Shown here: positions 10,972-19,432 of the stretch, piece after piece
Position numbering within the stretch: the stretch's first letter is position 1
How the letters are laid out: each line of letters opens with the position of its first letter
Virus record (IMG/VR): IMGVR_UViG_3300044213_000107
Location: 186,001-250,000 of that record
Reading direction: 5' to 3' (one strand)
DNA length: 64,000 nucleotides
Made by a program: the position numbers and the translations under genes
Notes under the pieces: model-generated
Told to the model about the DNA's origin: nothing
The model's database searches: none
The model's input: only the letters and a program-made list of their open reading frames with translations

Positions 10972-11409
10972 TTATAGTATAGCCGATAACCAATCAGTAT
11001 ACAATAAATTTTTATGTATTTTTATTTTCATTATCCCAGGAAAACTCATAAAGGAATGAGTCTTCCATACCTTGTTGCTTGTATCTTTGTACACAGATAT
11101 TTTAGATATGCTATTGATAAAATCTATAGTATCCACTGTTAACCTTTCCAACACAATATATAAATCTTCAGTTATATCATTGTTGGAATCAATTTTTGTG
11201 TCTGTTAGTTCCTTATTAACAAATTCTATTGAAACACTGGTTAAATCAGAATTAACAGGAATATTATAATGATGTATTTCTTCTATATCATTTTTATGTT
11301 CAATCGCATATTCGTACACACATAATTTATTGTTTATAAAAATGTTATATACAGGTTTTTTAGTAGACGTTGAATGGAGTAGCAACGATAGGGATAACTT
11401 TTTTGTCAT
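10972..11409 (-). CDS. hypothetical protein in the tRNA-inserted cassette
   Basis: 145-aa ORF overlapping the radical SAM C-terminus. Confidence 0.65.
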   Translation of the reverse strand: MTKKLSLSLLLHSTSTKKPVYNIFINNKLCVYEYAIEHKNDIEEIHHYNIPVNSDLTSVSIEFVNKELTDTKIDSNNDITEDLYIVLERLTVDTIDFINSISKISVYKDTSNKVWKTHSFMSFPGIMKIKIHKNLLYTDWLSAIL

Positions 11410-12892
11410 TTTGCTTGTGCTCTAAATATTTTTGCTCTAATCCTTCGATCTCTAATAATTTTTCATTTTGTCGGTTGATTTCAGAATAATACCCATATTC
11501 CTGCATTACTTCAACAAATCTTTTCCATCTGTTTACTCTAACATCAAATGTATTGTTTACAAATTGTGTGCTAGTCCAGAAAAAATCGCCCCACTGGTCA
11601 TGCCTATTATGTTCAAGACCGTATTCATCTGCATATCGTTGCATGAACCCGCTTCCATTTGTTAGCACCATTGGCAAAGATAAAAATACTTTTATCATAT
11701 TGTTAGTTGTTAAGTGGGCATGAGTTTTAAGTAAATCGATACTTTGTTGGAAATCATCTTCCGTTTCGGTGGGATATCCTACAAACATTAACCATACTTG
11801 TTTTATACCTTTATCAAAACAATTTTCAGCAAACCAAGTTATATCTTCATTACTGAATTTCTTCTTCATATCGTTACGAACTTTTTCACTACCCGACTCT
11901 ATGCCTACTTTAAACAATTTCGCTCCGGCAGTTGATGCTAGTTTAAAATCTGATTCAGGCATGGATATTTTAGATCGACAAATGGCATAGCCAGAATATT
12001 CTATTCTATTGGGAATTTCTTCAGTTAATACCGTATTCATTAAACGATAATTTGTGATACTCCCATTCACAAGATTGTCAGTAAACTCAAACTTATTAAT
12101 ACCATATTTAGAATGTGTTTCGATAATTTCACGTGCTATATCATTACCTTTTCTGTAGACGAATTTTGGCCAAGACGACTGCACATCGCAAAATGTACAC
12201 TCTCTGACACATCCTTTACTGCCAGTAACCGGTATAGTTAAATTTTTATTTTTGTAACTTGGATACAATGAAAAATTATATCCTTCCCATGAAGGTGCAG
12301 GTGTGTTACTAAGTGCCTCTGCAGATACAGGAGGTGCAGTGTGTATTCCTTTTTTCTTATTTTGGATGACAGAAATCAAATCATTTTCCGCATCCCCACG
12401 ATACACAGAATCTATCGGAAGATAATCCATGAAATAATTAGCATAATTAATTCCACTGATTCGTTCGTTGTTATCTAGACCTCTGCCACCTATCATTATG
12501 TAACTGTTAGGCGATATCTCTCGAACTATAGTGGATAAAGGTACAACAAAATCTAAACTTTGGCTAGAAAATACAGACAATAAAATTGTATCCGGATTAA
12601 AATTTTTTATTTGTTGTTTAACAGCTTTTCTAAGCCATTTTAAAATTTTTAAAATATTAATGCTATTTGCCGGTCTGTACCCTCTTATGGCAAACATATC
12701 TACTATTATATTCCATTGATCTGCAAATTCGCTAAACAAATCAATATTTAGGTCCCAAACTTTACTATTGTATCCATTATGTTTTAAAATGCCGTTTATA
12801 ACTGCAGGGCCGTATGGAACATCTCCGAAACTTTCTATTCCTGTATTAACAACTCTTACTGGAACTACTATTGTAAGGACATTTTTATTCAT
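11360..12892 (-). CDS. cobalamin-binding (class B-like) radical SAM protein
   Basis: N-terminal B12-binding-like domain (PYGPAVI...GG...GDAE), KGCVRECTFC, GIESGS, FVGYPTET. Confidence 0.85.
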   Translation of the reverse strand: MNKNVLTIVVPVRVVNTGIESFGDVPYGPAVINGILKHNGYNSKVWDLNIDLFSEFADQWNIIVDMFAIRGYRPANSINILKILKWLRKAVKQQIKNFNPDTILLSVFSSQSLDFVVPLSTIVREISPNSYIMIGGRGLDNNERISGINYANYFMDYLPIDSVYRGDAENDLISVIQNKKKGIHTAPPVSAEALSNTPAPSWEGYNFSLYPSYKNKNLTIPVTGSKGCVRECTFCDVQSSWPKFVYRKGNDIAREIIETHSKYGINKFEFTDNLVNGSITNYRLMNTVLTEEIPNRIEYSGYAICRSKISMPESDFKLASTAGAKLFKVGIESGSEKVRNDMKKKFSNEDITWFAENCFDKGIKQVWLMFVGYPTETEDDFQQSIDLLKTHAHLTTNNMIKVFLSLPMVLTNGSGFMQRYADEYGLEHNRHDQWGDFFWTSTQFVNNTFDVRVNRWKRFVEVMQEYGYYSEINRQNEKLLEIEGLEQKYLEHKQNDKKVIPIVATPFNVY

Positions 12893-13476: not shown

Positions 13477-13513
13477 GGTAGGAGCACGGGGATTTGAACC
13501 CTGAACCTATCAA
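13476..13513 (-). pseudogene. tRNA 3'-half remnant fused to the HNH stop codon
   Basis: TTGAT-AGGTT-CAGGG-TTCAAAT-CCCCG-TGCTCCT-A-CCA, with no matching 5' half found. Confidence 0.7.
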
Positions 13514-14085
13514 TGACTGAGTAGTCGTTTTGCCCTGGCGTGGCTAGCACCCTTGTCAGGCAACCCAACACTTCTCAATGCTTCTGAAATAGTATTATGT
13601 TTCTTAACAGCCTCTAATAATACTTCATCCGGAACAATTCTTTTTTTGTTATTTCTTCCTCGCCAAGTCTTAGTTTTTGAATGACAATTAGGACAAATAC
13701 ATTCTAAATTAGATCGGTCATTATTTTTTGTATCACCGTCTTTATGCTCTAATTCTAAAACAATAGGATCACCCATCCATTCTGAAATTCCACAATGGTT
13801 ACACTTATGACCTTGCTCTTCTAATACCCGTCGCTTTCTATTCTCGCTACCTAATTTTTCAAAAGGTGTGGATTGGTATTTCTCTAATGCCCAAGCTGTT
13901 GTCTTGGCACTTCGTAATCTTATTTCCTCGGTTGTAATTGGAGTTTTTCTAGTCCAACGACCGGCATTAGCAATACTTTTCTTCTTTTTGCTTTCTTCAG
14001 TAAACACTCTACTATTTGAACATTTTCTAGAACAGAATGTTCCAGGCTTAGTATGTGCTGTATTACATTTAGGACAATTTTTCAT
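13510..14085 (-). CDS. HNH homing endonuclease
   Basis: CPKC...FCSRKC zinc finger; CNHC...LELEHKDGDTKNNDRSNLECICPNCH. Confidence 0.92.
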   Translation of the reverse strand: MKNCPKCNTAHTKPGTFCSRKCSNSRVFTEESKKKKSIANAGRWTRKTPITTEEIRLRSAKTTAWALEKYQSTPFEKLGSENRKRRVLEEQGHKCNHCGISEWMGDPIVLELEHKDGDTKNNDRSNLECICPNCHSKTKTWRGRNNKKRIVPDEVLLEAVKKHNTISEALRSVGLPDKGASHARAKRLLSH

Positions 14086-14149: not shown

Positions 14150-14223
14150 TGGTAGGCCCGGAGGGTACTGACCCCTCTTTTACGGATTAAAAGTCCGTTA
14201 CTTCACCTTAAAGTTTCAAGCCC
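14150..14223 (-). tRNA. tRNA-Lys(TTT) with non-canonical T-loop
   Basis: ACGGA-CTTTTAA-TCCGT; T arm GAGGG-GTCAGTA-CCCTC. Confidence 0.8.
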
Positions 14224-14888: not shown

Positions 14889-15467
14889 ATGGAACACAAT
14901 TTAAATCTACAATATACACAAATACGTGATTATGTATTTGCATTATCTATACAATTTCCTTACTCCGACGAAGAAATTTTATCTGCAGCAAATACCGAGA
15001 TTCTTGAACGATGGGTTGGTCCCGGTGATAGGTACCGAACAAATTCTCCACAATCTAAAATATTAAAAGATATATTTGAAATATTTAAAGATCCTGCGAT
15101 ATTTAAACAACAAATATTAGATACGTTATACGCCACTGAAAAATACAAATATTTCTGGATTCGCAGCAAACAAGATTTGTTTACATCTTCAAGATTAAGT
15201 GTCGCACTCTACAAAGATTCTGCCAAATATTATTTAAAAAATCACCTGGATCCAAGAGACGTTATTGTATCAGGAATGTATTATCTCACAAAGTCAGATT
15301 TACAATATACAACAATCTACACTTCGGAAAATAATGATAATCCAATACAACTACTACCCAGTCAATACCAAGGTTGGATGTTAGCCAACACTGAAAATAG
15401 TTGGCACGATGGCAGAAATGAAGATTCTGTTGATAGGATTGCCATTTATTATGATTTGTATCTATAA
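14889..15467 (+). CDS. putative 2OG-Fe(II) oxygenase-fold protein
   Basis: NHLD...SGMYYL...SWHDG...DR, same layout as 2857-3495. Confidence 0.55.
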   Translation: MEHNLNLQYTQIRDYVFALSIQFPYSDEEILSAANTEILERWVGPGDRYRTNSPQSKILKDIFEIFKDPAIFKQQILDTLYATEKYKYFWIRSKQDLFTSSRLSVALYKDSAKYYLKNHLDPRDVIVSGMYYLTKSDLQYTTIYTSENNDNPIQLLPSQYQGWMLANTENSWHDGRNEDSVDRIAIYYDLYL

Positions 15468-15469
15468 CT

Positions 15470-15543
15470 TGGCGACCCATGAAGGAATCGAACCTCCGTC
15501 CTTAGTTTTGGAGACTAGTACACTACCATTGTGCTAATGGGCC
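15470..15543 (-). tRNA. tRNA-Trp(CCA)
   Basis: Loop CTCCAAA, G73. Confidence 0.93.
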
Positions 15544-16545: not shown

Positions 16546-16621
16546 TGGTACTCGGTAGGGAATTCGAATCCCTGTTCACGCCGTGAAAGGGCGTTGTCCT
16601 AGGCCTCTAGACGAACCGAGC
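16546..16621 (-). tRNA. tRNA-Glu(TTC)
   Basis: ACGCC-CTTTCAC-GGCGT. Confidence 0.95.
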
Positions 16622-16630
16622 ATACTTGTT

Positions 16631-16709
16631 TGGCGACTTGTAGGGGATTTGAACCCCTGATCTCTACCGTGACAGGGTAGCGCATTAAGCCAGACTATGC
16701 TAACAAGCC
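16631..16709 (-). tRNA. tRNA-Asp(GTC)
   Basis: CTACC-CTGTCAC-GGTAG, G73. Confidence 0.95.
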
Positions 16710-16714
16710 AAATT

Positions 16715-16952
16715 CTCTATATGTAAACATACCTAAGGAACTCTTGAACAATATGGACTCTGCCGGCACCACGGGTTCGTCTCCCGATTGGGTTCATTCG
16801 TTATTACAGCCTACATGATCTGTCAGTACACTCGTACAGTATCTTGCGATCCGTAACTACCTTCATGTGCACTGCATACTCCGCCCCGGCGAGCTGTCCC
16901 CTTTGCAAGCACCTAACAGTATAGGTAACCTTTTGTACGTTTACATATAGAG
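16715..16952 (-). ncRNA. candidate structured RNA (238 nt) heading the tRNA transcript
   Basis: 18-bp closing stem CTCTATATGTAAACGTAC/GTATGTTTACATATAGAG; inner GCCGG/CCGGC, GGAC/GTCC, ACATGA/TCATGT, CGGG/CCCG helices. Confidence 0.65.
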
Positions 16953-16985
16953 GCTATTGTTTACAATAGCTTATATGTGATTAAC

Positions 16986-17156
16986 TTTTTAAAGAACACA
17001 GTTAATTGCTTAACAAGCATGTATTGTAACACCTTTTTGGACAATTAGCAAGTGTTTTTTACTGCTGTTGCTGATTTGCTACAACGTTTGTTCGATAACA
17101 AACTAGTTAATTTCTTAACTTGTATCTATTATAGCACCAAATAATAACCCGCACAA
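16986..17156 (-). promoter_or_regulatory. tandem sigma70 promoters, each followed by a GNRA hairpin, then a boxA-like site
   Basis: P1 TTGTGC-N17-TATAAT (17156-17128), GTTAA-GAAA-TTAAC (17106-17119); P2 TTGCTA-N17-TACAAT (17051-17023), GTTAA-GCAA-TTAAC (17001-17014); GTTCTTTAAAAA (16986-16997). Confidence 0.7.
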
Positions 17157-17189
17157 TCTTCGGGTTTTGGGTGTTGTTTTTTAATAACA

Positions 17190-17212
17190 TGGAGTAGGTG
17201 ACAGGACTTGAA
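17190..17212 (-). pseudogene. 3' remnant (T-loop to CCA) of an ancestral tRNA, probably Cys
   Basis: TTCAAGT-CCTGT-CACCTAC-T-CCA, U73. Confidence 0.8.
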
Positions 17213-17247
17213 ATATATATTATTTCGTTTTGAACATAAATAATAAC

Positions 17248-18033
17248 ATGAACACCTGTCAACAATGTACTTCATTATTTGCTCAAACTCCTGGAACGTA
17301 CGGTAAATTTTGCTCTGTATCCTGTAGTAGTAAGTTTAATAATAAAATTAGACGCCAACAGACTACGGAAAACTATTTATTAAATCCAAAAGTTTGTAAA
17401 AATTGCAATTCAATCATAAATTATTCTCAAAGAAAAAGTAATATTTTTTGTAGCCGATCCTGCGCCGCTGTGTTTAATAATGCCAAAAAAGATTGGACTA
17501 ATATTAAAACTGGGCCGACACCTAAACAAAAGGCACCGAAATTAAAAAGAAAAGCGAGAACTAATACTATCCCAGATGCAGACGGACCATACACTATTAT
17601 ATACCTATGCACTTGCAAATTTACTGGAAAAAAATGGTACTCCCCAACAGTTAAGACCATACACCCATCAACAATATCAACTAAAAAATTGTATTCTTAT
17701 CAATGTAGATTTAACTTTGGTATTAAGTCGTACCCTGAATGGTTTGCTTATGCATCAAATTTAATAAACACTAACGGCTGGTACTCAGCCTCTAATAGAG
17801 GTAATAATTTATCTGGATGTTCTCGTGATCATTTGTATTCAGTATCGGATGGATACAAAAACAATATAGATCCTAAAATAATATCTCATCCTGCAAACTG
17901 TGAGATAATTCCGCACAGGAAAAATCAGAGTAAAAACAAGACTTCGTCGATTACATTAGAAGAACTAAAAGAAAGAATCAAAAAATTTAATCAAAAATAT
18001 TTGGAGATGCCAGATGGGGTCGAGCCATCCTAG
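17248..18033 (+). CDS. HNH-family endonuclease with two Cys-rich zinc-finger repeats
   Basis: CQQC...FCSVSC and CKNC...FCSRSC; SRDHLYSV...HPANCEIIPHRKNQSK; start taken at ATG 17248 (TAAATA-N5-ATG) rather than TTG 17230. Confidence 0.8.
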   Translation: MNTCQQCTSLFAQTPGTYGKFCSVSCSSKFNNKIRRQQTTENYLLNPKVCKNCNSIINYSQRKSNIFCSRSCAAVFNNAKKDWTNIKTGPTPKQKAPKLKRKARTNTIPDADGPYTIIYLCTCKFTGKKWYSPTVKTIHPSTISTKKLYSYQCRFNFGIKSYPEWFAYASNLINTNGWYSASNRGNNLSGCSRDHLYSVSDGYKNNIDPKIISHPANCEIIPHRKNQSKNKTSSITLEELKERIKKFNQKYLEMPDGVEPS

Positions 18034-18075
18034 AAAGTTTTGCAGGCTTCCACCTAACCGCTCGGACATGGCATC
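18002..18075 (-). tRNA. tRNA-Cys(GCA) with non-canonical T-loop
   Basis: GATGCCA/TGGCATC, U73, loop CTGCAAA, T arm GATGG-CTCGACC-CCATC; overlaps the HNH C-terminus antisense. Confidence 0.85.
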
Positions 18076-18101
18076 GTAATATAAAAATTTTAGTGTGGTA
18101 G

Positions 18102-18117
18102 TTCGGCGCACACCTAC
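18102..18117 (-). pseudogene. 5' remnant of the ancestral tRNA
   Basis: GTAGGTG-TG-CGCCGAA; GTAGGTG is the exact partner of CACCTAC at 17194-17200. Confidence 0.65.
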
Positions 18118-18125
18118 ATAATAAA

Positions 18126-18218
18126 TGGTGGAAGCGGTGAGACTCGAACTCACACACCCTGTTGAGAGCCCTCAGTTTTCAAGACTGCTGCCGCTATGCC
18201 GATTCGGCTAACGCTTCC
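18126..18218 (-). tRNA. tRNA-Ser(TGA)
   Basis: Loop CTTGAAA, long variable arm. Confidence 0.93.
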
Positions 18219-18220
18219 AA

Positions 18221-19402
18221 TTATACTGGGAATACTTCCCTAAAATTTGTTTTTCTTATACGATCTAACATACCAATATATTCGTTAAATGTATTGATTA
18301 AGTTAGGATTGTGCACAGCATTTTCCAATGAGTTTATTGTAAATTTAATCGCTGATATATAGTTATATCGCAGATAATGCGTTAAAGGAATCTGAGATTT
18401 TAGTTCTTGCAAATCGAGAATAAATTGATTTCTTTGTGCATCTGTTAACACTTCTATGTCTAAATATGGTTTAGACATTAATCTACCAACATTCACAGCA
18501 TATGAGTTATCAACACAATATTGAATTAATGGTATCAACGCCCAGAAACTTGTATACTGTAGTGTATGGCCAATGGTAATAGGATTATTAGGCCATGTAG
18601 GATTAGGACGTGTGGCTAATTTTTTAATATTAGCATCTACGGTTGCCCACTCACTACCATATCTAACATATTCTGTATGTTGCTCGGTACCTTCTAAACT
18701 TACAACTATTGCAACAGATTTAAATTTTGAAATACAATCGTATACTTCATCTGTTAATGTTGTACCGTTTGTGGTAACTGTTAAATTTAATTGCTCCGGA
18801 TGCGGAATGCTTTTTAACATTGCAATAGCATTAGGAGTTATAAGTGGCTCGCCACCTGTTAAAAAAATATGTTCAACATTTTCTAATAGTCGAGGCTCCA
18901 GCTCTTGATATTCATCTGTTTCAAACCAATTTCTTTTTTGTATAAATTGATCATCATGAGTTAAGTGAACAAAATTTTTATATTGTTCTCTATTCATTTT
19001 TACTTCAGTTTCTATACTAGAACTGCAATAAGGATTACACATTATACATTTTAAATTACAGTGATTGCCAAATTCAACATGTAAATGTTTTATGCCATAA
19101 GATTTATCTGGTGAAAAATCTTGTCTAATAAAATTTTCAAATGTGCGATTACCATTTATTCTGTACGACGATGATCCATTGTCTTCTTCGTCCCAACAAC
19201 GACTACAACCTTCATGTCTTTGGCCATTGTCTAGTTCTTGACTAATTTTAATAACTTTTGTTTGTCGCCAACGATCAAATTGATCATATTTATCAACCAA
19301 ATTACCATCTTTTATTTGATAATTACAACAAGGTGTAAGTGTGCCGTCTGTGCGAATATTAACACCAATATGCGAATGTATACAAAATGTTTCTTGATTC
19401 AT
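18221..19402 (-). CDS. radical SAM protein with SPASM/twitch-type cluster
   Basis: CNLKCIMC, TGGEP, LTPCC...CSRC; start likely ATG 19402 (TATAAATA-N5-ATG); track gives 19423. Confidence 0.9.
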   Translation of the reverse strand: MNQETFCIHSHIGVNIRTDGTLTPCCNYQIKDGNLVDKYDQFDRWRQTKVIKISQELDNGQRHEGCSRCWDEEDNGSSSYRINGNRTFENFIRQDFSPDKSYGIKHLHVEFGNHCNLKCIMCNPYCSSSIETEVKMNREQYKNFVHLTHDDQFIQKRNWFETDEYQELEPRLLENVEHIFLTGGEPLITPNAIAMLKSIPHPEQLNLTVTTNGTTLTDEVYDCISKFKSVAIVVSLEGTEQHTEYVRYGSEWATVDANIKKLATRPNPTWPNNPITIGHTLQYTSFWALIPLIQYCVDNSYAVNVGRLMSKPYLDIEVLTDAQRNQFILDLQELKSQIPLTHYLRYNYISAIKFTINSLENAVHNPNLINTFNEYIGMLDRIRKTNFREVFPV

Positions 19403-19432
19403 AGTGATATTTATATGCAACATATATTGTAA

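Follow-up and report, generated by a model that had tools for sequence, protein, structure and literature searches.

A predicted nuclease gene with its own tRNA-Cys lies inside a resident tRNA-Cys gene of a giant phage

Organization of the locus

The window analysed here is a 64,000-nt stretch of the IMG/VR virus record IMGVR_UViG_3300044213_000107 (positions 186,001 to 250,000 of that record). All tRNAs of the window lie on the minus strand. A tRNA-Ser(TGA) gene (18126-18218, -), called by ARAGORN and scoring 33.4 bits against the Rfam tRNA model, is followed at normal array spacing, 8 nt after its CCA, by the first 16 nt of a second tRNA gene (18117..18102, -). This 5' remnant reads GTAGGTG-TG-CGCCGAA and comprises the acceptor strand, U8, G9, and the D-arm up to GAA. 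The 3' end of the same gene, nt 54-76, lies at 17212..17190 (-) and consists of the T-loop TTCAAGT, the 3' T-stem CCTGT, the acceptor strand CACCTAC, U73, and CCA. No 5' T-stem precedes it. The two acceptor strands pair perfectly, and about 37 central nucleotides (tRNA nt 17-53), including the anticodon arm, are gone.

Between the two remnants lies an insert of ~876 nt. It contains an ORF of 261 aa for an HNH-like putative nuclease (17248-18033, +) and a convergent, unrelated, complete tRNA-Cys(GCA) gene (18075..18002, -), hereafter the cargo tRNA. The last 32 nt of the ORF, that is, its last 10 codons plus stop, overlap the 3' end of the cargo tRNA. A 13-nt filler (18089..18101, -) that is homologous neither to the target tRNA nor to other cassettes separates the 5' remnant from the shared part of the insert. 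The first-pass annotation, which had described an HNH cassette nested inside an ancestral tRNA gene and carrying a replacement tRNA-Cys, therefore holds in its sequence details, although the HNH assignment and the late promoter it proposed are not confirmed (see below).

The remnants are not a chance resemblance to a tRNA. A 19-nt piece of the 3' remnant hits 29 IMG/VR stretches (contigs numbered here with the prefix L). One is the window's own contig; 27 of the other 28 show a complete tRNA-Cys(GCA) gene beginning GTAGGTGTG, of the type GTAGGTGTG...CACCTACTCCA, and one (L033) is cut by a contig end. Three (L016, L035, and L036) match the 3' remnant at 23/23 positions, and L028 matches the 5' remnant at 15/16. 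Thus an intact tRNA that begins GTAGGTG and ends CACCTACTCCA, as predicted in the first-pass annotation, exists; it is tRNA-Cys(GCA), as inferred from U73, and it is common in other phage tRNA arrays. In several of those arrays it lies one gene after tRNA-Ser(TGA): L015, L027, and L039 have Ser(tga)-Ser(gct)-Cys, and L014 has Ser(tga)-Trp-Cys.

It is noteworthy that no close relative of this phage with an empty site was found, so that the insertion is inferred from the remnants and is not seen as a polymorphism. Megablast of the locus against GenBank phages gave no match, a more distant blastn search found only tRNA pieces and a Lak-phage nuclease fragment, and a metagenome scan for the junction of remnant and flank gave 0 hits.

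A displaced 3' tRNA fragment that starts in the T-loop is also the classic scar of integrase-mediated insertion. Such an insertion, however, is contradicted by the sequence. No integrase is present, the only ORF being the putative nuclease, and there are no direct repeats. The remnant TTCAAGTCCTGTCACCTACTCCA differs from the cargo 3' end CTCGACCCCATCTGGCATCTCCA, and its acceptor strand (CACCTAC) does not pair with the 5' strand of the complete tRNA (GATGCCA) but with the separate 5' remnant. An intron or a split tRNA that is reassembled is rejected on similar grounds. No group I intron or other Rfam family was hit in 16600-18300 even at E up to 10, the breakpoints fall in the D-loop and at T54, and the remnants lack nt 17-53, so nothing can be reassembled. 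We consider these possibilities highly improbable.

The putative nuclease

The start codon of the ORF is ATG 17248, conserved as MNxC in homologs, and not TTG 17230; the stop is at 18031-18033. A protein search returned 173 homologs, and the protein matches phrog_23051 at 6.5e-31. It carries two N-terminal FCS/treble-clef zinc fingers and a C-terminal His-Me-finger-like domain in which R193-D194-H195, H214-P215, N217-C218, N226, and K229 are invariant. The gene is under purifying selection (dN/dS about 0.07-0.2).

The HNH label receives no support from Pfam or from sequence searches of the PDB. Pfam searches with the window protein and with 28 family members found only zinc-finger families, and PDB profile searches found only FCS/MYND zinc fingers or noise. 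There is also no Pfam or PHROG hit to a GIY-YIG domain. The assignment rests on the conserved RDH...N...N motif, on a predicted beta-beta-alpha element, and on weak structural leads. An AF2 model (pLDDT 84.5) places strand 191-195, strand 218-222, and helix 223-228 at pLDDT about 90. A Foldseek search of the PDB with the full model gave nothing significant, with only the PacI HNH at E 7.1. BFVD hits include annotated HNH proteins at 1.6e-5 with low TM, and Atlas neighbours include PF01844 clusters at 0.90. Folding the C-terminal half alone without an alignment gave a pLDDT of 35 and was uninformative.

Upstream of the ORF lies a cassette-borne leader, ATTTCGTTTTGAACATAAATA (17222..17242, +), which ends 5 nt before the ATG. 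It is conserved in the window, L002, L049, L050, L053, and L055 despite different flanks, and an ATAAATA-like box also occurs in the related Trp and Gly clades described below. The leader could be a promoter or a translation signal of unknown type. The late promoter proposed in the first-pass annotation is not supported: in the window TATAAATA occurs 7 times against 10.5 expected, and CATAAATA occurs 3 times against 7.5 expected.

The cargo tRNA

The cargo tRNA has the acceptor stem GATGCCA/TGGCATC, the anticodon loop CUGCAAA, U73, and an encoded CCA. ARAGORN misses the window copy, but it scores 37.6 bits against Rfam RF00005 (gathering score 29). Across the family, the cargo genes behave as real tRNAs: 18 of 21 pairs show compensatory change, 88.9% of cells are paired, and 0 of 500 shuffles reach this. 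MFE folding does not return a cloverleaf even for the good copies and therefore says nothing about function.

The window copy carries three unusual substitutions, C31 (a C.A mismatch with A39), C54, and C60, at positions that are constant in relatives. They are unique among 12 aligned cargo copies plus L146, a contig that has a cargo-type tRNA-Cys without the nuclease gene. The abnormal T-loop CUCGACC, to which the first-pass annotation had drawn attention, is thus peculiar to this window's copy and is not a family feature, since all 11 other cargo copies and L146 have T54. It looks more like decay or a private variant than a designed immunity mark. It could be that the cargo tRNA is no longer functional in this phage, in which case the cassette has simply knocked out tRNA-Cys and the host tRNA suffices. 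In favour of this view, the window copy loses 8.8 bits against the L002 copy (46.4 bits), and two of the three changes are synonymous third positions of nuclease codons (GGG for GGA, GAG for GAA), so the protein is conserved while the tRNA drifts. On the other hand, the gene still passes the gathering score, its acceptor stem gained a G1-C72 pair, and all four stems remain mostly paired; from the window alone, another tRNA-Cys elsewhere in the 260-kb contig can be neither excluded nor assumed. Loss of function here is possible but less likely than not.

Recurrence of the cassette in other phages

Homology with other cassettes spans window 17210-18088 only, with different flanks outside it; on the cargo side, BLASTN homology ends at 18084-18088. 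The same layout recurs in at least 8 other genomic contexts. In L002/L003, L049, L050-52, L053/54, L055/56/L067, L057, and L069/70 the nuclease gene has a convergent tRNA-Cys overlapping its 3' end, and each also has a 3' tRNA remnant with U73-CCA that starts exactly at T54, about 35-40 nt upstream of the ATG. The 32-nt overlap and the convergent tRNA are kept in every close homolog examined. The association is not without exceptions, however. In addition to L146, L071 has the nuclease gene without a detectable tRNA at its 3' end, and the L106 ORF call looks broken.

The downstream remnants match local tRNA-Cys lineages and not the cargo. For example, the L002 remnant is the exact 3' end of a different intact tRNA-Cys lineage (AGTGAGG...) found in 7 other contigs. 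L050 also keeps the matching 5' stump GCACCGATGGCGGA. Nuclease and cargo identities co-vary (Spearman 0.69 over 55 non-independent pairs), whereas the remnants do not follow the nuclease.

Sister nuclease clades carry tRNA-Trp or tRNA-Gly(TCC). The Trp-clade cassettes adjoin remnants with G73 that are 1-3 mismatches from intact tRNA-Trp, and the Gly-clade cassettes adjoin remnants that are 0-2 mismatches from tRNA-Gly(TCC). On the nuclease tree, all convergent cassettes form one clade (99/99), and the Gly (100/92) and Trp (100/95) carriers are each monophyletic. ORF 14889-15467 of the window has the same convergent geometry next to tRNA-Trp but is not related to the nuclease.

One may ask whether the polarity is the reverse, such that the complete tRNA-Cys is the native gene and the nuclease gene arrived with a tRNA 3' fragment picked up in a previous host. 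L146 has the cargo-type tRNA-Cys with the same tRNA-Trp neighbour and the same 10-nt spacer as L002 but no nuclease gene, and L002 and L055 have no 5' stump. In the window and in L050, however, the matching 5' stump lies on the far side of the complete tRNA, so the complete tRNA is inside the insert, and cargo identity tracks nuclease identity across different flanks. We regard the reverse polarity as very unlikely, and for this window it is contradicted by the position of 18102-18117.

A model for insertion and replacement

Although the enzymology is inferred, the architecture is best explained if window 17213 to about 18088 is a free-standing homing-endonuclease cassette that destroys a resident tRNA gene and supplies a linked replacement of the same isotype. 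It is proposed that during co-infection the nuclease cuts or nicks the tRNA-Cys gene of a cassette-free phage in or near its T arm, and that repair copies the cassette from the donor. On the downstream side the join falls at the start of the T-loop, which is either the cut site or the only microhomology shared by all tRNAs, and the recipient therefore keeps its own nt 54-76. On the upstream side the join is irregular, and 0, 6, 14, or 16 nt of the old gene survive. The old gene, and with it the target, is destroyed. The linked cargo tRNA would keep cysteine decoding capacity, so that the insertion costs the phage little, and the overlap makes the nuclease and the rescue tRNA hard to separate. 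The same design, with matching cargo and victim, would operate in the sister clades on tRNA-Trp and tRNA-Gly(TCC) genes. We hold this model with reasonable confidence. That the nuclease cleaves the intact gene and that the cargo is immune to cleavage remain inferences; the cargo keeps an ordinary T arm in relatives, so what would make it immune is unknown. Isotype matching could also come from selection after random hits on tRNA genes rather than from nuclease specificity.

An alternative is ordinary mosaic recombination between phage tRNA arrays, with the nuclease gene as a passenger. The tRNA arrays of these phages are highly rearranged, T-loop microhomology alone could fix the downstream junction, and loss of a phage tRNA without replacement would be selected against, which could account for the pairing of like isotypes. 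Against this, the architecture is tied to one nuclease family across at least 8 Cys contexts plus the Trp and Gly clades, with clade-specific cargo, the nuclease is conserved by selection, and the overlap is kept. Nuclease targeting of tRNA T arms is also known to exist, from T4 SegB (PMC2330249). This alternative therefore appears unlikely.

Relation to known mobile nucleases

T4 SegB is a free-standing GIY-YIG homing endonuclease encoded within the T4 tRNA cluster. It recognises the T-psi-C motif GGTTCRANTCC, cuts at tRNA gene 3' ends, and drives inheritance of itself and of neighbouring tRNA genes (PMC2330249). The present protein differs in its predicted fold, an HNH-like domain with FCS zinc fingers. 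SegB is co-oriented with the tRNAs and cuts many isotypes, and no disrupted victim gene, isotype-matched cargo, or gene overlap has been described for it. In intronless homing by free-standing endonucleases of the T4 SegF/SegG/MobE type, and by T5 F-TflI/II/IV in the tRNA region (as cited in PMC2330249 and PMC2790892), the target is likewise in or next to a conserved gene of the nuclease-free relative and flanking DNA is co-converted. There, the neighbouring gene stays intact and a few polymorphisms protect the carrier, whereas here the target gene is physically gutted and a whole unrelated gene of the same function is delivered. Group I introns with homing endonucleases also invade tRNA genes without loss of tRNA function (reviewed in PMC3984707), but they lie in the anticodon loop and function is kept by RNA self-splicing; in the present case no ribozyme was detected and function would be kept by a second gene. 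Integrative elements that target tRNA genes appear to replace only the 3' part of the tRNA by means of an integrase and an identical att repeat, whereas here a whole tRNA is replaced.

Mobile nucleases normally enter useful genes only when an intron or intein splices them out again, or they sit beside the gene. Gutting the gene and bringing a spare would be a third solution, and we found no description of it in the literature searched. It would explain why phage tRNA arrays are so mosaic, why truncated tRNA fragments and odd, program-missed tRNAs lie beside unannotated ORFs in jumbo phages, and how particular tRNAs spread between unrelated phages. Phage tRNAs are increasingly seen as counter-measures to host tRNA-cleaving defences (PMC13096335).

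More tentatively, there could be a large natural family of 'cleave-and-rescue' cassettes in which each nuclease clade is dedicated to one tRNA isotype, cuts resident genes of that isotype in phage tRNA arrays, and overwrites them with its own overlapping, cleavage-resistant tRNA. Such cassettes would act as a main engine of tRNA gene turnover, and of the spread of anti-defence tRNAs, among jumbo phages. The nucleases may read isotype-specific features of tRNA genes. Cys, Trp, and Gly are represented here with victim remnants, whereas Met, and perhaps Ala, Ile, and Arg, are suggested only by adjacency. In the case of Met, the cultured jumbo phages Serratia BF and Cronobacter GAP32 have an unannotated homolog of the nuclease gene that overlaps tRNA-Met.

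The interrupted tRNA-Cys gene

Within contig IMGVR_UViG_3300044213_000107 (260.7 kb), to which no GenBank phage is close, the window carries a minus-strand array of 25 tRNAs called by ARAGORN, plus two more seen only by Rfam. Reading the minus strand after tRNA-Ser(TGA) (18218..18126), an 8-nt spacer is followed by GTAGGTG-TG-CGCCGAA (18117..18102), 26 nt of AT-rich sequence, and a 74-nt tRNA-Cys(GCA) (18075..18002) that scores 37.6 bits against Rfam but is not called by ARAGORN. Next comes the antisense of a 261-aa ORF, which runs on the + strand (17248-18033) and whose last 32 nt overlap the tRNA. The ORF is followed by 35 nt of leader and then by TTCAAGT-CCTGT-CACCTAC-T-CCA (17212..17190). 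The two short pieces are the two ends of one tRNA: GTAGGTG pairs with CACCTAC, and the second piece consists of a T-loop, a half T-stem, an acceptor strand, U73 and CCA.

This arrangement is not due to chance. A 19-nt piece of the 3' fragment occurs in 29 IMG/VR stretches, one of which is the window's own contig. Of the other 28, 27 show a complete tRNA-Cys(GCA) gene that begins GTAGGTGTG, and one (the stretch L033) is cut by a contig end. Three of these stretches (L016, L035 and L036) match the 3' fragment 23/23, and another (L028) matches the 5' fragment 15/16. Comparison with these alleles places the breakpoints after tRNA nt 16, in the D-loop, and before T54. About 37 nt, including the whole anticodon arm, are missing, and 889 nt lie between the two stumps.

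The insert as a recurring unit

Homologs of the ORF are abundant, with 173 found in the protein search and 232 IMG/VR stretches. We examined the homolog-bearing loci L002/L003, L049, L050-52, L053/54, L055/56/L067, L057, L068 and L069/70, which are 59-85% identical to the window protein. In all of them a convergent tRNA-Cys(GCA) overlaps the 3' end of the ORF, and in the closest ones the overlap is the same 32 nt. In all of them except L068, where none was evident, a tRNA 3' remnant lies about 35-40 nt upstream of the ATG; it ends U73-CCA and starts exactly at T54. The conserved leader ATTTCGTTTTGAACATAAATA is cassette-borne. The first-pass annotation had assigned the nuclease gene a late promoter, but T4-type late-promoter boxes are not enriched in the window.

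BLASTN homology between the window and these loci is confined to 17210-18088, except for L051/L052, which also share the downstream flank 17106-17190. This flank, just downstream of the 3' remnant, contains a hairpin (17146-17166) with a T-run on the + strand and a TGCTATAAT promoter-like box on the - strand. The remnant of L051/L052 comes from a different tRNA-Cys lineage.

The remnants differ from locus to locus and, where traceable, belong to local tRNA-Cys lineages. The L002 remnant is the exact 3' end of an AGTGAGG-type tRNA-Cys found intact in 7 other contigs, whereas the L053 remnant is 3 mismatches from the GTAGGTG type. L050 keeps both stumps, GCACCGATGGCGGA and a 3' remnant ending TCGGTGC-T-CCA. 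The upstream join is irregular, such that 0, 6, 14 or 16 nt of the old gene survive, while the downstream join is constant.

Divergence of the nuclease and its cargo tRNA

Cargo and nuclease evolve together, but the remnants do not follow them. Cargo identity to the window falls with nuclease identity, from 95% tRNA at 85% protein to about 55-65% at 52-64%, with a Spearman coefficient of 0.69 over 55 pairs that are not independent. The cargo tRNAs keep a cloverleaf through compensatory change: 18 of 21 pairs change on both sides and 88.9% of cells are paired, a level that no shuffle of 500 reaches and for which slid controls give 35-49%. The ORF has dN/dS of 0.07-0.2.

The cargo of the window differs from all 11 aligned relatives, and from the locus L146, at three otherwise constant positions: C31 (a mismatch with A39), C54 and C60. 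C54 and C60 are synonymous third-codon changes in the overlapping ORF. The score drops from 46.4 bits for the L002 copy to 37.6 bits. Therefore, the abnormal T-loop, which the first-pass annotation had noted, is a private feature, possibly decay, and not a family-wide immunity mark.

The association of nuclease and tRNA is not without exceptions. At L146 153-226 (-), a cargo-type tRNA-Cys (GATGCCA...) sits 10 nt after tRNA-Trp, exactly as in L002, and is followed by unrelated GC-rich sequence instead of the nuclease. The cargo lineage therefore also lives as an ordinary array gene, and that locus is either its source or a case of nuclease loss. The locus L071 has the nuclease without a detectable tRNA at its 3' end, and the ORF call in another locus, L106, looks broken. 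The contig of locus L004 (3214-3288 and 5675-6395) encodes a tRNA with anticodon CTA, which reads TAG, while its nuclease homolog has an in-frame TAG and no long ORF. Either TAG is recoded there or the nuclease is decaying; the tRNA-Cys cargo of this contig is intact.

Related cassettes with other tRNA isotypes

Among 80 IMG/VR loci, proteins 45-50% identical carry a convergent overlapping tRNA-Trp, and proteins 38-41% identical carry tRNA-Gly(TCC). Upstream of these ORFs lie remnants of the same isotype. The remnant in locus L081 has G73 and is 1 mismatch from intact tRNA-Trp, and that in L079 is 3 mismatches from tRNA-Trp. The remnants in L094, L087 and L090 are 0 mismatches from a tRNA-Gly(TCC), 1 mismatch from a tRNA-Gly, and 2 mismatches from a tRNA-Gly(TCC), respectively. 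A maximum-likelihood tree puts all convergent cassettes in one clade (99/99), in which the Gly carriers (100/92) and Trp carriers (100/95) are each monophyletic. The Cys carriers form one group together with two rows that lack a called tRNA.

Relatives also occur in cultured jumbo phages. Serratia phage BF gp435 (318389-319129) and Cronobacter phage GAP32_407 (293896-294699) are both annotated 'hypothetical protein', and each is convergent with and overlaps a tRNA-Met. T-arm-like debris lies upstream (GGTTCGAAATCGG in BF; ACAGGTTCGATTCCTGT in GAP32).

More distant relatives of the nuclease (33-40% identity; IMG/VR loci L098-L142) are co-directional with tRNAs. Many follow a tRNA-Ala or tRNA-Cys, sometimes a tandem same-isotype pair (Ala-Ala in L100 and L113; Cys-Cys in L116 and L122), and others overlap the 5' end of tRNA-Cys, Ala, Ile or Arg. 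There could be a second architecture of the same principle in these loci.

The predicted HNH-like protein

The N-terminal half of the protein has two C-x2-C...FCS-x-SC zinc fingers, with matches to DUF2116/treble clef and zf-FCS in family members and to PDB FCS fingers at weak E-values. The C-terminal half matches phrog_23051, of unknown function. The protein has invariant R193-D194-H195, H214-P215, N217-C218, N226 and K229. In the AlphaFold model (pLDDT 84.5) these residues sit on strand 191-195, strand 218-222 and helix 223-228, which is the layout of a beta-beta-alpha metal finger with an insertion. Atlas and BFVD neighbours include DUF7487, NUMOD3-bearing and HNH-annotated phage proteins. 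However, Pfam HNH models, PDB sequence search and PDB Foldseek do not confirm the assignment, and we therefore refer to the protein, which the first-pass annotation called HNH, as HNH-like.

Inferred mechanism of insertion

The sequence observation made in the first-pass annotation is confirmed, and its structural inference, that a nuclease cassette with a complete replacement tRNA-Cys is nested inside an ancestral tRNA gene, is supported and extends to a whole family, although the enzymology and the proposed immunity of the cargo to cleavage are untested. T4 SegB shows that a phage nuclease living in a tRNA cluster can recognise the T-psi-C motif GGTTCRANTCC, cut at tRNA gene 3' ends, and force inheritance of itself and adjacent tRNA genes (PMC2330249). 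By analogy, the nuclease described here would break a cassette-free tRNA gene of its isotype, and repair from the carrier genome would copy the cassette.

The constant T54 junction is either the cut site or the only microhomology shared by the donor remnant and any recipient tRNA, whereas the irregular upstream junction points to illegitimate joining on that side. In this model, destroying the middle of the victim removes the presumed target, and the cargo tRNA compensates for the loss. Isotype matching may reflect nuclease specificity, selection against uncompensated tRNA loss, or both, and the data do not separate these. The cassette is probably a free-standing homing endonuclease element. 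The literature found comprised SegB and general reviews, and none of it, in a collection that is incomplete so that this is absence of evidence only, described a nuclease-plus-replacement-tRNA cassette inside a gutted tRNA gene.

Other features of the tRNA array

The array contains a second tRNA with an odd T-loop. It lies at 14153-14223 (-), directly after tRNA-Lys(CTT), and is seen by Rfam (44 bits) but missed by ARAGORN. Its anticodon loop CTTTTAA suggests Lys(TTT), and its T-loop is abnormal (GTCAGTA). A 191-aa ORF inside the array (13510-14085, -) has a weak Pfam HNH_3 match (E 0.0014, below the cut-off) and is possibly another homing endonuclease. A 192-aa ORF (14889-15467, +) on the opposite strand to the array ends 2 nt before the convergent tRNA-Trp (15470-15543). 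Its geometry is the same as that of the cassette, but it has no family hit and no similarity to the nuclease.

Two radical-SAM proteins (18221-19423, -, and 11360-12892, -) border or interrupt the array. One also has a SPASM-like N-terminus and the other a B12-binding-like region, and they could be tRNA or nucleoside modification enzymes. Between the cassette and tRNA-Asp lies a GC-rich stretch of about 210 nt (16716-16951), bracketed by a 13-nt inverted repeat (16716-16728 TCTATATGTAAAC and 16939-16951 GTTTACATATAGA). The only Rfam hit in this stretch is a weak IMES-3 match (E 0.18), and it is possibly an uncharacterised stable RNA, like the species 1/2 RNAs of the T4 tRNA cluster.
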